The notes beneath the pieces were generated by a model. The model searched no databases, had not been told where the DNA came from, and saw only the letters and a list, made by a program, of their open reading frames with translations. Both the position numbers and the translations under genes were made by a program. DNA of 64,000 nucleotides from Oopsacas minuta (Eukaryota; Animalia; Porifera). The DNA is taken from contig JAKMXF010000088.1 in assembly GCA_024704765.1 (NCBI GenBank), positions 434,001 to 498,000 of the forward strand, given 5' to 3'. How positions within the stretch are numbered: the first letter of the stretch is position 1; each line of letters opens with the position of its first letter. Below are positions 47,520-53,671 of this stretch, in pieces.

Positions 47520-47619
47520 AAACTTCATTGGCATGGGACTAGGAATTCTCCTATATATTTTTCACTCAGTTTCTAGAAGCTCTCCATTTCCACAGGCCTC
47601 GTTTATGGAGGTGACACTG
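47520..47619. mobile_element. MITE family B fragment
   Basis: gggactaggaattc core and right TIR. Confidence 0.78.
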
Positions 47620-48322
47620 TATTACATTCGAACTCCGGTTAATCGAGCCAAAATTGTAAGGTCCCGATGTGACCCTATTAAGCAGAGTCTGCTGTACTTT
47701 GTTATTCAAAGCTCTATTCTGAGTAATCTAATATATTACCCAATTAAAGAACAAGTGATTAAAATACGAGTTATATTTCTGGAAATATACTAATGCAAAT
47801 GATTCAAACCTCAAAACACAATTAATTGAACTTCCTTAAAACTGATCAACAATAATTACGTAATCCCGCCTCCCAGGTCAACACCCAACTCTTTACAAAT
47901 CAGCTGCTATATAGCTAAGTTTGGGTTAGATAATCTTTGATTAAATTACAGTATTGTATATCCATAATTGCAGACTACTGATAGTGATGTCTTCTCATTA
48001 ATTATCAGTAAACCCAGCTTGAAGGATTTGATTAATTATGAACAAAGTAACCACATCAAAAGGTGTGATTATAGTGTCTGTTTGAGAATTGTATAGTTGT
48101 AGTAATTGTATATGCCAATATATGGATATTGCAAAAGTAATTACGGATACGTCTTGGGCGGGATTTTACAGTCGTATGTATATGAATATTGGTAAATCGG
48201 TAAGTATTAGGATGTTGCTGTACCTCTGCGTATATCATATTTTTAAGGGGTTAATTAACTACAAATTCTTACACCTTTTGGTTACATGTACTACGGTCTG
48301 TGTAGATGAAGATTTAATATTA

Positions 48323-48577
48323 CAGTAAACTCCCGTTACATCTAACACGGGTATATCGATATACCCGCTTATATCGATATACCCGCTAATATAGATGTAC
48401 CCGCTTATATCGATATACCCGCTAATATAGATGTACCCGCTTATATCGATATACCCGCTAATATCGAAGTCTAAAATTGTACAAATATGCTCCCAAAGCC
48501 GGAAAAACACCTGAATTAATTTGTTATATTGAAGTAATTATCTCTTGAGCTTCAATATACGTAACAAGAGTTGACTG
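48323..48577. mobile_element. MITE family A with internal 18-bp tandem amplification
   Basis: Both termini; six ATATCGATATACCCGCT(T/A)-like units at 48353-48460. Confidence 0.87.
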
Positions 48578-48617: not shown

Positions 48618-49073
48618 ATGCAACCTTGGTGGGTGATCATATTCACCATTTGGTATGTGGTATCTCTGATCTATGTAGGGAAGAGATGTTGGTCTGGGGG
48701 CTTGTTAATAGGTGTTGCTACATGCTGGGGAATAATCGGGGGGACATGGGAACATGTCAAGGCTTATTACTCTGAGTTGGACGCCAGACCTGTGGAAGAC
48801 CGATGGATGCTTGTGGTTTTTGATGGTCCAATAGTACTCGCTTCCTCTTATATGCTCATCAAATTTCTCTTCAATACTCCAGCTTCTAATTTGCTGAAGA
48901 TATTTTTCTTATTTTTAGGTGCGGTATTATTTGCAAGCTTCATAATAACAACTGAAGCTAAACAGGATCTGTATTGGCATATACAACATTCAATGATACA
49001 CTTTGTTACTGCACTACAGTTTGGCGTAATTGCCTATTACTTGGACAGAGACAAGGCTAAGAAAATTAATTAG
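48618..49073 (+). CDS. Small multi-pass membrane protein, paralog 1 (~151 aa; His motif YWHxxHxxxH)
   Basis: Intronless ORF with ~5 hydrophobic segments. The ATG at 48618 aligns with the paralog starts and follows a strong acceptor; an upstream in-frame ATG lies at 48582. C-terminal KKIN dilysine. Confidence 0.75.
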   Translation: MQPWWVIIFTIWYVVSLIYVGKRCWSGGLLIGVATCWGIIGGTWEHVKAYYSELDARPVEDRWMLVVFDGPIVLASSYMLIKFLFNTPASNLLKIFFLFLGAVLFASFIITTEAKQDLYWHIQHSMIHFVTALQFGVIAYYLDRDKAKKIN

Positions 49074-49721
49074 ACTTTTAAGAGATTCTGATTTAATTCT
49101 TGTAATTACTGTAATTGGATTTGGTTGATAAATGTAGATTTATGTCGGGTAGCTGTCATAATTATTTATCAAATTGAATTATAGTCGAACGGATTAATGG
49201 GATATCGGTTAATTGAGTCACTTGTAGAGGAATAGAACTACAGTCAAACCTGCTTAAGGGCACCTGCACATAGCGGCCAGTGGCCACAATTTCTTGTCCC
49301 TTACTGGCGCTAAACTGTCTATAACGGTTCTTTTATCTAACGTCATGTTGTCGGCAAAGATTGCAAATTAGACTTTTTGCAATAGCTATTAATTCCGAAT
49401 TATTCAAACTTCCCAGAATGTTTTCATATCAATCCGTCAGTCAAGAATTCCTTCAATTTCCAATAATGATAATCTATTGAGATTATAATGGCATCTTGAT
49501 GGTTTAATATCAGTGAGACATTCTTATTTGAGATAGCCAAAGACACATCGGTTTTGTCTCACAGATATTAAATACTAAATAGCACCAAATTAACCATTTA
49601 ACAATTCTAATGAATTTTGTCTGTGAATCAATTTCTAAATAAGACAGTATGTTATTTAATCTGGACAATAGTCACAAAGATTTCCTTAAATATCTAAAGT
49701 TCATAAACAACTTTTTGCAAA

Positions 49722-50192
49722 ATGATAGAACAAACGATAGAACCGTGGCTACACGTATTTTCCATCTGGTATGCAATCAGTACCGCGTATACTTTACGGA
49801 AACTTGTTTATGGAGGCGTCCTCGTTGCTGTACTAGGCACATGGGGGTTTTTATCTGATATATGGACACACCTTTCTGTATATATTTATTGGGATCCGGC
49901 TGGTACAGAAATTCCCCTTCCTAAAGTTATATTTTTAGCCCCATTTGCTTTCGCTTTCCTACATCTATATTACCAGCTATGTGCTAATACGTATGCGACG
50001 AATTTAACAAAGATTCTCTTGGCTTTATTCTTCATTGTCGGTAATGTAACATTCACTCCAGCTGATGATTCACTGAAGGATATATACTGGCATTATAATC
50101 ATAGTGTACTTCATGTGATATCTGCAGTTACTGTTGGGGTTGTTGCTCAGCATTTGGATGAACTACGGATGATAAAGGAAAAGATAAACTGA
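49722..50192 (+). CDS. Small multi-pass membrane protein, paralog 2 (156 aa)
   Basis: Aligns end to end with paralogs 1 and 3 (PW, FSIWY, WxH, NLTK, DIYWHYNHSVLH); C-terminal KEKIN. Confidence 0.8.
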   Translation: MIEQTIEPWLHVFSIWYAISTAYTLRKLVYGGVLVAVLGTWGFLSDIWTHLSVYIYWDPAGTEIPLPKVIFLAPFAFAFLHLYYQLCANTYATNLTKILLALFFIVGNVTFTPADDSLKDIYWHYNHSVLHVISAVTVGVVAQHLDELRMIKEKIN

Positions 50193-50709
50193 TTGTTTTA
50201 GGAGTTAGTGTGTGTATTTATGTATTGGAACATTTTCAAGTTGTGTCATGCTATAAGGCCACTTTGGGTTGGAAACTTGTTTCAGCTCCACCGCCCGCAT
50301 CTGATTTGGCTACCGCGCTAACATTGTCATTATTTCACTATTTACTTAATGTATTTCAACTACAAGGTGTATAAACTGGCTAGTAACACAATAGAAGCAT
50401 CTTTTTCATAGTCTAGCCTATTTTCATATCAAATTTGATTTTAATAATTATAATATTTTTATGAACGAAGTCAATGGACCAATTTCCAGCTGATACCTCA
50501 CAAAATAATGAGATAATGATAATGAACCGCCCGCATGCATGTTCAGGTGGATGTAATGTAGAACTGAAACAAATTTATCATTAACACTGCGGACACTATT
50601 TAGATAAGAACACTTAACAAACTAAATATATAATAATAGACTTAATACGAATTCCTATACAATAATTATCCGTAAATAATCAAATGTAATTATTTGTTCT
50701 TTTTGTTTA

Positions 50710-51150
50710 TCAATGTATTCCCTTCAAATACTCATCAAATACTCCTACAGTAACTACAGTAATCAGATGGAGTACAGCGTGTCTAGAATGCCAGTATATA
50801 TCCTTTATTGAGTCCTTAGAAGATGGAGTAAATACTGTATTAGCAACAATGAAGAGTAATACCATTAGAACTTTTGTTAAATTCGTCGCATAACTATCCA
50901 TACAGAGCTGATAAAACATGTAGGAGAAGGCGATTATAAACGGGACTAAAAATAAAATTCTAGAGAGGGGAAGTCCACGGCCATCAGGGTCCCAATATAC
51001 GTAAACTGAAGCATGTAGCCAAATATCTGGTATAAATGACCAAGTCCCAAGCACCGCAACAATCCTATCTCTGGAGCATAGTTTCCTTACGGTATACAAA
51101 TTAGTGACTGTATACCAGATTGAAAATATATGTAGCCAAGGTTCTATCAT
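50710..51150 (-). CDS. Small multi-pass membrane protein, paralog 3 (146 aa), inverted
   Basis: Closest to paralog 2 in protein and DNA (atgatagaaccttggctacat). Keeps DIYWHSRHAVLH. The only minus-strand gene found. Confidence 0.78.
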   Translation of the reverse strand: MIEPWLHIFSIWYTVTNLYTVRKLCSRDRIVAVLGTWSFIPDIWLHASVYVYWDPDGRGLPLSRILFLVPFIIAFSYMFYQLCMDSYATNLTKVLMVLLFIVANTVFTPSSKDSIKDIYWHSRHAVLHLITVVTVGVFDEYLKGIH

Positions 51151-51336
51151 TTGTAAGTTGGTAGAATGTTTAGGTCTTTTATTTTAATGTGACTACTGCC
51201 TTGAGAAATTTGATAGTGTATGTTTAAGGAAATTGTTCACAGACATTTTAGAAACTAAAGGTATCAGTACGATGGGTGCCGTTATAAGAATACCCCTTGG
51301 GAGTAGCAATACATGTTCTTAGAACCGTCATCCACT

Positions 51337-51364
51337 GTATTTGTATTTCGTTTCCCTTTATTAG
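51337..51364 (+). promoter_or_regulatory. Candidate (trans-)splice acceptor of HGD
   Basis: gtatttgtatttcgtttccctttatTAG|caATG. Confidence 0.62.
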
Positions 51365-51366
51365 CA

Positions 51367-53671
51367 ATGACTAATCATATAATTGGAGGAACTGCTAAGC
51401 TTTCCTCTTCGGATTTATGGTCTGCTCTTTGCTATCATCCTGGGTTTGGGAGCGATCTCTCTTCCGAGGCTCTCCCCTCCTCTCTCCCTGTTGGACAGAA
51501 TAGTCCCCAGATATGTCCTTATGGATTATACCCCGAGCAGTTGAATGGGGCTGCGTTCACATGCCCCAGAGAGACGAATAAAAGGAGTTGGCTCTATCGT
51601 ATCCGTCCGAGTGCAGTGCATGAGCCTTTCTCTATCTTGAAGGAAGGCACGAGCCAAGACCTGTCAGATAATTGGGACGAAATAGCCCCCAATCCCAATC
51701 AGATTAGATGGAACCCATATCCTCTACCGGATGATAAAGTTAAAATCGACTTCATACAGGTAATCCTGGGCCAGGGATTAGTTTTGACTCTTGGAATTTA
51801 TGGATGTAAACTGGAAATTATTGTAAGAGATTGTTAAGTATGCCATTGCATTATGTCAAATAATTACTCGTTGTTTCATCAAAAGTTCTCTCAAGAAACA
51901 TTCACACTTCGATTGGAGTATTACCCACATTTTTGCATGTAGGGTCTTCACACATTGGGTGGGGCAGGAGATACCAGATCAAGACATGGAATGGCTATAC
52001 ATATATATGCTTGTAACGCTAGTATGGTAGATAGGTGTATGTATAACAGCGATGGAGACTTCCTTATTGTGCCGCAGTTAGGGGCTCTGAAGATTACAAC
52101 TGAATTCGGTAGAATATTAGTACAGCCGAATGAGATTTGTGTGATACAGCAAGGAATGAGGTGAGATAATTTAGTGTTCATATATTAGCAAAATCCGCCA
52201 ACAGTGTAATAATAGTAAATTTGAAGATTGTCAAGGAGATCGCCCGCCAAATTACGAGACTGTTAGTATATTTAATATTTGAATATTAATAATTATACAT
52301 ATCTTATTTTGTTACGTATGTTCATATTGGATATTTATATTTAGGTTTTCCATTGAGGTTACTGGACAAACTCGTGGTTATATTCTCGAGGTTTACGACA
52401 CTCATTTCCAGCTCCCAAATCTAGGACCAATTGGTGCAAACGGTTTAGCTGCTCCCAGAGATTTCCTTTCTCCAGCTGCTGCTTTTGAAAACAGAGAAGT
52501 TCCTACAGGATATCATATAATCAGTAAATTCCAGGGGAAGCTCTTCGTTGCTAAGCAATTCCACTCACCTTTTGATGTAGTAGCTTGGCATGGAAATTAT
52601 ACTCCATACAAATATGACTTGAATAGGTTTATGGTTATTAACTCAGTAGCGTTTGATCATGCTGACCCTTCTATATTCACAGTATTGACTTGTCCTTCTC
52701 TAAGACCAGGAGTTGCAATAGCTGACTTTGTTATTTTCCCTCCAAGGTAAACGAATACAGGATAAGTCAACTCCCGTTAAATCGAACACGGGATAGCTCG
52801 AAATACCCGCCTATATTGAAGTCTGAGATTGTACAAATATGTACTCAAACCGTCAAAGTAACATAAAGTTTATCGGTTATAGAAGTATTATCGCAGTCCC
52901 TTGAGCTTCGATATAATGGGAGTTGATTGTATATCGTAATTATATGGAAATTCTATAATCAGATGGATGGTACAAGAGCATACATTCCGTCCTCCTTACT
53001 ATCATCGTAACTGTATGTCAGAGTTCATGGGACTAATCAAGGGTAAGTATGATGCTAAAGAGGAGGGGTTCTCTCCAGGAGGAGGTAGTCTACACTCTAT
53101 GATGACTCCACATGGTGCTGATGCTACTGCTTATGATAATGCTGTTAGTAGGCCCTGTAAACCTGTCAAGTAAGTACAAAAATATATAAATAGGAGTACA
53201 GTGTAACCTCCACTAACCAAGGACGCCGAAAAATACTACCAATTCCCAGTTTGTGGAGGTTTCACTGATCCCCTATTCGCTTATTAGGTATTTAACCATG
53301 GATGTTGGATTGAATTTGTCTGCTCAGATGTTGTTCTAGGTCATTTTGAGGCACTATTCGCTTGATTGGAGGGGATTTGGGTATAACACAAAATGAATTA
53401 ATCCTCCATCCATGGTACATATCTAATAGACCATTTTTGTCAGAATATTTTTCTACATTTCCCTAAATAACTTAATTATAGGCTTGAAGACACTATGGCA
53501 TTCATGTTTGAGTCATCACTTAGCCTAGCACTAACTAAATGGGGAGATGATAACAGTCTTAAGTCTATGGATTATTGGAAATGTTGGCAACCTCTAAAAT
53601 CCAATTTCAATCCTGACTGGAAGCCTTCAGTACTACAGGACAGAGAGATTTCAAGTTCTCTACTCACATAA
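51367..53671 (+). CDS. HGD: Homogentisate 1,2-dioxygenase, ~469 aa, 5 exons
   Basis: Exons 51367-51759, 51943-52160, 52345-52746, 52963-53169 and 53482-53671. [38 protein letters not shown], iron ligands in [12 protein letters not shown] and TPHG. Confidence 0.97.
52764..52929. mobile_element. MITE family A
   Basis: Full length; fills most of HGD intron 3. Confidence 0.87.
53199..53267. mobile_element. MITE family B, short derivative
   Basis: cagtgtaacctccac ... gtttgtggaggtttcactg. Confidence 0.8.

Follow-up and report, generated by a model that had tools for sequence, protein, structure and literature searches.

The CREST superfamily, which includes the alkaline ceramidases, the PAQR/hemolysin III proteins, Per1/PGAP3, SID-1 and the TMEM8 proteins, was defined by seven core transmembrane (TM) segments in which an SxxxH motif lies where TM2 ends, an Asp where TM3 begins and an HxxxH motif where TM7 begins (PMC3146951). 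A review from 2026 described the site as H3-S-D and gave most members at least seven TMs, seven of them being conserved superfamily-wide; it also noted that myomaker binds Zn without the Ser and the Asp, and that Per1/PGAP3, ACER1/2 and the TMEM8 proteins have an Nout-Cin topology with a site in the outer leaflet (PMC13562381). Here, a stretch of 64,000 nucleotides of the glass sponge Oopsacas minuta (contig JAKMXF010000088.1, positions 434,001 to 498,000; hereafter, the window) was analyzed, in which three small genes encode paralogous membrane proteins with a cluster of conserved His residues. These genes belong to an undescribed, lineage-restricted small multi-gene family of membrane proteins of the endoplasmic reticulum (ER) type. 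Its best reading, although it falls somewhat short of an even chance, is that of an ER-resident, Zn-dependent lipid hydrolase of CREST type working at the luminal face.

The open reading frames (ORFs) of the three genes (positions in Table 1) contained neither stop codons nor introns, and their products could be aligned from end to end. The initial annotation had described them as three intronless paralogs of 146-156 residues with about five TM segments, the first of them being diverged. This description held: the ORFs were intact, five helices were predicted by AlphaFold2, and the identity of paralog 1 to either of the other two was 31-32%, against 58% between paralogs 2 and 3. The motifs listed there (PW, F(S/T)IWY, WxH, NLxK and D(L/I)YWHxxH(S/A)xxH) were likewise present in the three paralogs, and the endings of the ER-retrieval type, KKIN and KEKIN, in two of them. 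In the case of paralog 1, an in-frame ATG lies further upstream (48582) and gives a product of 163 residues in the ORF list, but the conserved start is the Met at 48618, according to the alignment of the orthologues; an independent gene call (P0008) agreed with this start.

To define the family, relatives were searched in other sequence collections. No further copies were found in the genome of the window beyond the three paralogs. An exhaustive profile search covering 1.84 billion cluster representatives (about 15 billion proteins) returned six matches, all of them members or fragments of the family, and the word-index protein searches, carried out with one paralog and with the 10-sequence profile (E ≤ 10), gave family members only, one of them extra. 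A scan of IMG/VR for viral relatives yielded none. The relatives came from four other assemblies, ERZ25069837, ERZ25072740 (two haplotigs), ERZ20067936 and ERZ25072730, and ten full-length members were assembled by six-frame ORF searches of the loci in the five assemblies. The downstream neighbours in the window are an intron-bearing homogentisate 1,2-dioxygenase gene (HGD) and then a calpain gene; in each of the five assemblies, the family was found next to HGD on its upstream side, and in two of the four others calpain was also nearby, as in the window. A maximum-likelihood tree separated a subfamily A (paralog-1-like) from a subfamily B (paralog-2/3-like), with a support of 100/99 for each, and both were present in four of the five assemblies within the stretches examined. 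Judging from these sequences, the A/B duplication predates these species and the split is deep.

A survey of the taxonomic range including viruses and bacteria, which had been proposed as a check, therefore gave no relatives outside a few related assemblies, and the family would be confined to a small sponge clade, represented by this handful of assemblies. The suggestion that the genes were horizontally acquired was not supported by these data: the GC content of the genes (0.37-0.40) resembled that of their surroundings (0.33-0.37), the position next to HGD was kept, the A/B split was deep, and no viral or bacterial relatives were detected by sequence.

The conservation of these proteins was then considered at the codon level. 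Between species, synonymous sites were saturated (proportion of synonymous differences, pS, 0.7-0.83), with a proportion of non-synonymous differences (pN) of 0.2-0.45, and the dN/dS ratio was 0.13-0.34 where dS could be estimated. Since the ORFs stay open at saturated synonymous sites and with these ratios, the conservation of motif and frame lies far above chance, and the alignments indicated that the family is under purifying selection. Run X5, which derives from a different organism, contained copies of all three genes with about 5-8% of the bases different.

Transcription was evaluated with run X4, which is not recorded as RNA and yet behaved like an RNA library. It was the only run with contigs skipping the GT..AG introns of HGD (51757>51941 and 52158>52343), and its depth was zero across the intergenic positions 49404-49570. 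One of its contigs (49732-50377) extended over paralog 2 and its flanks, another (50557-51323) covered the entire ORF of paralog 3, and many contigs with a depth above 20,000 were found over paralog 1. Since expression is poorly gauged from contig depth, only the following is claimed: all three genes appeared to be transcribed without splicing, and paralog 1 appeared to be abundant.

Other copies of the family were also observed. A relocated and decaying subfamily-A copy, P0010 (L023:10001-10492; ERZ20067936, contig ptg000036l), was found in transposon-rich surroundings with hAT/ZBED-like transposase genes. In this copy, Arg takes the place of the last His of the motif, changes affect several of the conserved Trp and Gly residues, and the C-terminus is read through. 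A third, N-terminally truncated subfamily-B copy was present in ERZ25072740 (L005:8765-9184 and L006:8773-9072); the His motif was intact on one haplotig, whereas on the other the copy ended before TM5, and it was therefore considered a polymorphic or decaying duplicate.

The architecture of the proteins was analyzed in AlphaFold2 models built from the ten-sequence alignment. The subfamily-B model (predicted local distance difference test, pLDDT, 89.9; predicted template modelling score, pTM, 0.83) contained helices at residues 8-31, 33-55, 69-89, 94-111 and 121-155, and the subfamily-A model also consisted of five helices (pLDDT 84.8, pTM 0.78). The members were 146-157 residues long and, following the numbering of paralog 2, Y17, H50, Y54, F71, D120, W123, H124, H127 and H131 were invariant in all ten. 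Position 58 was Asp or Glu in every member and H11 was kept in eight of them, while neither the W in WxH nor the NL in NLxK was kept in all ten sequences.

The distribution of charges pointed to the orientation of these proteins in the membrane. Basic residues averaged 2.0 per sequence in loop 1-2 and 3.1 in the C-terminal tail, with none at the N-terminus, and loops 2-3 and 4-5 were net acidic. Since the basic residues gather in loop 1-2 and in the tail, by the positive-inside rule the N-terminus is expected in the lumen and the C-terminus in the cytosol (N-out/C-in). A canonical KKxx or KxKxx ending was present in six of the ten members; this COPI retrieval signal is functional only on a cytosolic tail, and hence these di-lysine tails fit the same topology. 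Under this arrangement, H11, H50, Y54, D/E58, D120, W123, H124, H127 and H131 all lie on the predicted luminal side, towards the ends of the helices. In TM5, D120, W123, H124, H127, H131, S/T134 and L145 fell inside a single 100-degree arc (240-340 degrees) and therefore form one continuous conserved face. The depths estimated in the model from the luminal ends of the helices, about 7.5 Å for H50, 4.5 Å for H124 and 9 Å for H127, were compatible with a convergence of the His residues on one Zn2+ ion, and H50 would be level with H124 to H127.

When these features were compared with the CREST definition, the initial proposal of a CREST-like link stood in part. The His at the end of TM2 and the HxxxH of the last TM were found family-wide: H50, 5 residues short of the end of helix 2, does not vary among the members, and H127xxxH131 is present in ten of ten members, 6-10 residues into helix 5, with Ser or Thr at position 134. 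An acidic residue also follows the TM2-end His, at position 58, 8 residues after H50, in the loop past helix 2 (helix 3 starts at residue 69), and the TM3 Asp of CREST proteins could have its substitute in the invariant D120, which precedes TM5. The sponge family and the CREST proteins share a helix bundle in the membrane, a TM2-end His and a last-TM HxxxH on the same membrane side, and a small or hydroxyl residue after the HxxxH; the acidic residue on that side is a plausible further counterpart. They differ in that the sponge proteins have about 150 residues and five helices, are devoid of the Ser, and carry the additional invariant residues D120 and H124. The TMEM8/DUF3522 proteins, including myomaker and PGAP6, resemble the family in their Nout-Cin topology and outer-leaflet site, both of which are predicted for the sponge proteins; myomaker also resembles it in dispensing with the Ser, but has seven TMs. 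Per1/PGAP3 (PF04080), the GPI (glycosylphosphatidylinositol)-specific phospholipase A2 of the ER/Golgi, would have in common with it a luminal N-terminus and active site and a cytosolic C-terminus, and its early secretory location fits the di-lysine tails of the sponge proteins. Nevertheless, these proteins are devoid of the N-terminal Cys-rich luminal segment and the signal peptide of Per1/PGAP3, have five TMs rather than seven, and gave no sequence match to PF04080.

Language-model queries of the Atlas pointed in the same direction. With two members that are only 28% identical, the neighbours with a family name were exclusively clusters of Ceramidase, Per1 and DUF3522, with scores of 0.92-0.93 and 196-202 shared features, although Atlas neighbours have no expectation value (E) and the second query reached a recognition value of 2009 against a mark of 2300. 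For the subfamily-A member, the neighbour ranked first among those with a name was a Per1 cluster (score 0.93, 202 shared features). Many of the neighbours were short proteins of giant viruses. These short membrane proteins (Atlas clusters of 134-172 residues; the BFVD entry A0A8F8KQE8 of Clandestinovirus, among others) were the nearest in the feature space of the language model, and some of them have partial Pfam matches to Ceramidase or DUF3522; they are alike in length and in predicted bundle shape, but show no detectable sequence homology to the sponge family. A search of the literature for small CREST-like proteins of giant viruses found nothing relevant.

Several results weighed against a CREST assignment, in addition to the limits of the Atlas scores. 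The models of both subfamilies had five helices and not the seven-TM core, and at the position of the SxxxH Ser, four residues before H50, subfamily B had Asp and subfamily A had Gly. According to helix geometry, D120, H124, H127 and H131 span about 16 Å along one helix face, and therefore these four residues cannot all bind one ion. Sequence and profile searches of Pfam, NCBIfam and the PDB gave no family above threshold, and no bridging sequences appeared in the exhaustive search with the hidden Markov model. The best Pfam match of paralog 1 was indeed DUF3522 (PF12036), with residues 60-129 aligned on positions 113-188 of the 188-position profile and ending after the HxxxH (18.6 bits and E 0.0022 for the full length; 20.7 bits and E 5e-4 for the C-terminal fragment), but it missed the gathering threshold of 29.3 bits and was obtained with only one of the ten members. 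Other members matched unrelated TM families equally well (7TMR-DISM, 0.001; NMN_transporter, 0.0025; DUF6768, 0.005; DUF6442, 0.007). In the comparison by hhalign with eight PAQRs of the same genome, D120...H127xxxH131 was aligned on the FD...SHxxxH of the PAQRs; nevertheless, the score (20.2, P 0.036) was barely higher than those of the reversed controls (15.0 and 17.6) and non-significant.

The fold search that had been proposed as a check returned generic helical bundles and no CREST-specific match. Foldseek found no match in the PDB, and in VIA a designed five-helix bundle, rhodopsins, GPCRs and the tails of vinculin and catenin were recovered at Z 7-9. Myomaker (PDB 8T03 and 8T05) reached Z 7.4 and 7.2 with the subfamily-B model (best: root mean square deviation 4.1, 135 residues aligned) and was the sole CREST structure among the best 50 rows of VIA, AdipoR, ACER3 and SIDT being the other solved ones considered, but these values lie inside the band of the generic bundles; with the subfamily-A model, no CREST chains were found among the best 50 rows. 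The Atlas shape search and BFVD gave no significant match, the best being a Clandestinovirus protein (E 0.038, TM-score 0.50/0.56). Taken together, homology with CREST was considered plausible but unproven, with the chances for and against it roughly even, and the present evidence does not allow the family to be classed within CREST. Of the reduced, possibly undescribed lipid-modifying family envisaged in the initial annotation, the small undescribed family with its His cluster was recovered, whereas the matches to CREST were non-significant. TSPO, EBP/EXPERA, ERG28, PAP2 and fatty-acid hydroxylase were also considered as candidates and were set aside on the basis of their motifs and the lack of a Pfam match.

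The genes, their conservation, the RNA-like coverage, the five predicted helices, and the invariant residues with their sidedness were observed here, and a metal site is the most economical reading of them because four invariant His, an invariant Asp and an acidic residue share one membrane face. The loss of the last His in the decaying copy P0010 was weighed as support for a constraint on the intact members. In the mechanism proposed for a hydrolase of CREST type, the N-terminus would be in the lumen and the cytosolic di-lysine tail would mediate COPI retrieval to the ER. H50, at the end of TM2, and H127/H131, at the start of TM5, would hold a metal, most likely Zn2+, on the side of the luminal leaflet, and D120, H124 and the acidic residue 58 would probably be water-activating or second-shell residues. 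The most likely activity would be the hydrolysis of an acyl bond, either ester or amide, of a lipid of the luminal leaflet, a chemistry modelled on the outward-facing CREST enzymes Per1/PGAP3, PGAP6 and ACER1/2. Since a five-helix bundle cannot enclose a lipid, the site of this reduced bundle would either face the bilayer through a lateral opening or be completed by oligomerization. ER residence, metal binding, hydrolase chemistry and a common ancestry with CREST are thus what we infer from these data. If the CREST link is true, the intramembrane Zn site of the lipid hydrolases would be workable in a five-helix scaffold of about 150 residues, and this would set the minimal catalytic core of a superfamily to which the ceramidases, the adiponectin receptors, the GPI-remodelling lipases and myomaker belong; the small size would favour structural and mechanistic work.

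The genes for CREST proteins and GPI remodelling were surveyed in the genome of the window by a six-frame family search, exon by exon, of the draft assembly. Nine PAQR/HlyIII domains were found, each in a single stop-free frame, as well as exons of alkaline ceramidase, PGAP1 (3e-60), eight genes of the Frag1/PGAP2 family, whose matches need not be PGAP2, and one Peptidase_C13 (GPI8/legumain-type) gene. One of the PAQRs lies on the contig of the window, about 300 kb away (G000:C88:791739-792416). Neither Per1/PGAP3 nor DUF3522/TMEM8 was found, a result which, in an exon-wise search of a draft, is no proof of absence. The genome of this glass sponge is known to lack several core metazoan genes. 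Since PGAP1, the Frag1/PGAP2 family and Peptidase_C13 were kept and Per1/TMEM8 was not found, there would be room for a GPI phospholipase A2. The family might then fill this apparent Per1/PGAP3 gap in GPI-anchor remodelling as a minimal five-helix CREST derivative that removes the sn-2 acyl chain of the anchor, and it would in that case be the smallest known intramembrane Zn hydrolase; such a specific assignment was nonetheless considered improbable. A role in lipid remodelling like that of myomaker, in connection with the syncytial tissue of glass sponges, would be still more speculative, and the fusogen-like role mentioned in the initial annotation is pure speculation.

The main rival of the CREST-type hydrolase is a lineage-specific orphan without CREST ancestry, in which the ladder of D120, H124, H127 and H131, together with H50 and H11, would form a path for metal ions or protons; under this reading, the protein would serve in the ER as a metal transporter, channel or metallochaperone, possibly as an oligomer. 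This explanation, rather unlikely but to be taken seriously, agrees with the lack of any significant link to a family by sequence, profile or fold. The spacing of the invariant residues (i, i+4, i+7 and i+11), which are stacked along a single face and extend from the luminal surface into the middle of the membrane, would also suit a pathway better than a single site, and a bundle of only five helices could not surround a lipid pocket alone. However, both Atlas feature searches led to CREST families only and to no transporter families, and the TM2-end His with the last-TM HxxxH is the CREST layout. The oligomer received no support from complex prediction either, although the predicted complex of paralogs 1 and 2, modelled with an A-B heterodimer in mind, scored 0.01 and was uninformative either way. 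Even if the CREST link is false, what remains is a clean case of a strongly constrained and lineage-restricted family of putative membrane metalloproteins, for which no detectable relatives emerged from about 15 billion proteins. A small protein binding haem or another redox cofactor, with H50 and one His of TM5 as axial ligands as in b-type cytochromes built as membrane bundles of four or five helices, was judged distinctly improbable. Invariant His residues do occur on two TM helices at a similar depth, and a COX15/CtaA cluster was recovered in the Atlas shape search (TM-score 0.51), but this was one among many generic rows and no haem-protein family appeared in any sequence or feature search; besides, three of the four His lie on one helix face (i, i+3, i+7), which is atypical of bis-His haem.

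Two further explanations concern the genes themselves rather than the activity of their products. Capture from a giant virus (Nucleocytoviricota), followed by domestication in the ancestor of these sponges, would account for the short uncharacterized giant-virus membrane proteins among the nearest Atlas clusters and the top BFVD rows, and for the intronless genes. Nevertheless, this origin is very improbable: the BFVD matches were non-significant and no viral relative was found by sequence, the GC content is like that of the flanks, and the host microsynteny is kept in five assemblies. Moreover, each of the nine PAQR domains of the genome is also in one uninterrupted frame, and hence the absence of introns is not diagnostic. 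It is scarcely credible that the ORFs are open by chance, or are pseudogenes in decay, and serve no function as proteins. It is true that they have no annotation or known domain and that dispersed repeats flank the genes, but the frames are open at saturated dS, with a dN/dS of 0.13-0.34, and the polar residues of the TMs are invariant. Confident AlphaFold2 models were obtained from only 10 sequences, the RNA-like run extended over all three ORFs, and P0010, a genuine decaying copy, looks different. The CREST-type lipid hydrolase was retained as the preferred reading.

Table 1. Genes, motifs and neighbouring elements of the locus, numbered from the first nucleotide of the window.
Feature	Position	Strand	Remarks
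Paralog 1 (subfamily A)	48618..49073	+	151 aa from conserved Met; C-terminus KKIN (KKxx)
Paralog 2 (subfamily B)	49722..50192	+	156 aa; C-terminus KEKIN (KxKxx)
Paralog 3 (subfamily B)	50710..51150	-	146 aa; without di-lysine tail
Paralog 1 TM5 motif DLYWHIQHSMIH	48966..49001	+	D117, W120, H121, H124, H128; columns invariant
Paralog 2 TM5 motif DIYWHYNHSVLH	50079..50114	+	D120, W123, H124, H127, H131; columns invariant
Paralog 3 TM5 motif DIYWHSRHAVLH	50767..50802	-	Columns invariant in family alignment
Paralog 2 WTH with invariant His50	49863..49871	+	Predicted luminal end of TM2 (alignment and model)
Paralog 1 WxH equivalent	48747-48755		
Paralog 3 WxH equivalent	51013-51021	-	
Inverted-repeat arms (paralogs 2/3)	50062-50166 / 50715-50819		
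HGD gene	51313-53200	+	Head-to-head with paralog 3
Tandem repeat of 18 nucleotides, TATATCGATATACCCGCT	48352-48467		6.4 copies (period 36, 97% match)

With regard to the layout of the locus, paralog 3 is oriented tail-to-tail with paralog 2, and the inverted-repeat arms are the mark of an inverted duplication of these two genes. Towards its other side, paralog 3 is placed head-to-head with HGD, which begins about 160 bp from the start of paralog 3; a promoter common to both genes, or a functional tie to tyrosine catabolism, is not excluded.

Additionally, repeated sequences were observed around the three genes. The TATATCGATATACCCGCT tandem repeat is located about 115-230 bp upstream of the start of paralog 1, and its surroundings showed a k-mer depth 20-100x the single-copy level in the DNA-like runs; this stretch is therefore part of a dispersed repeat family. 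Very high contig depth was also detected at 47567-47733, 48235-48568, 49237-49403, 50239-50572 and 51241-51407, and many joints linked these high-depth places (e.g., 47573>50272 and 51331>48451). The shared depth and the joints thus indicated that copies of one interspersed repeat lie on the flanks of every one of the three genes, and these copies may have aided their duplication and inversion.

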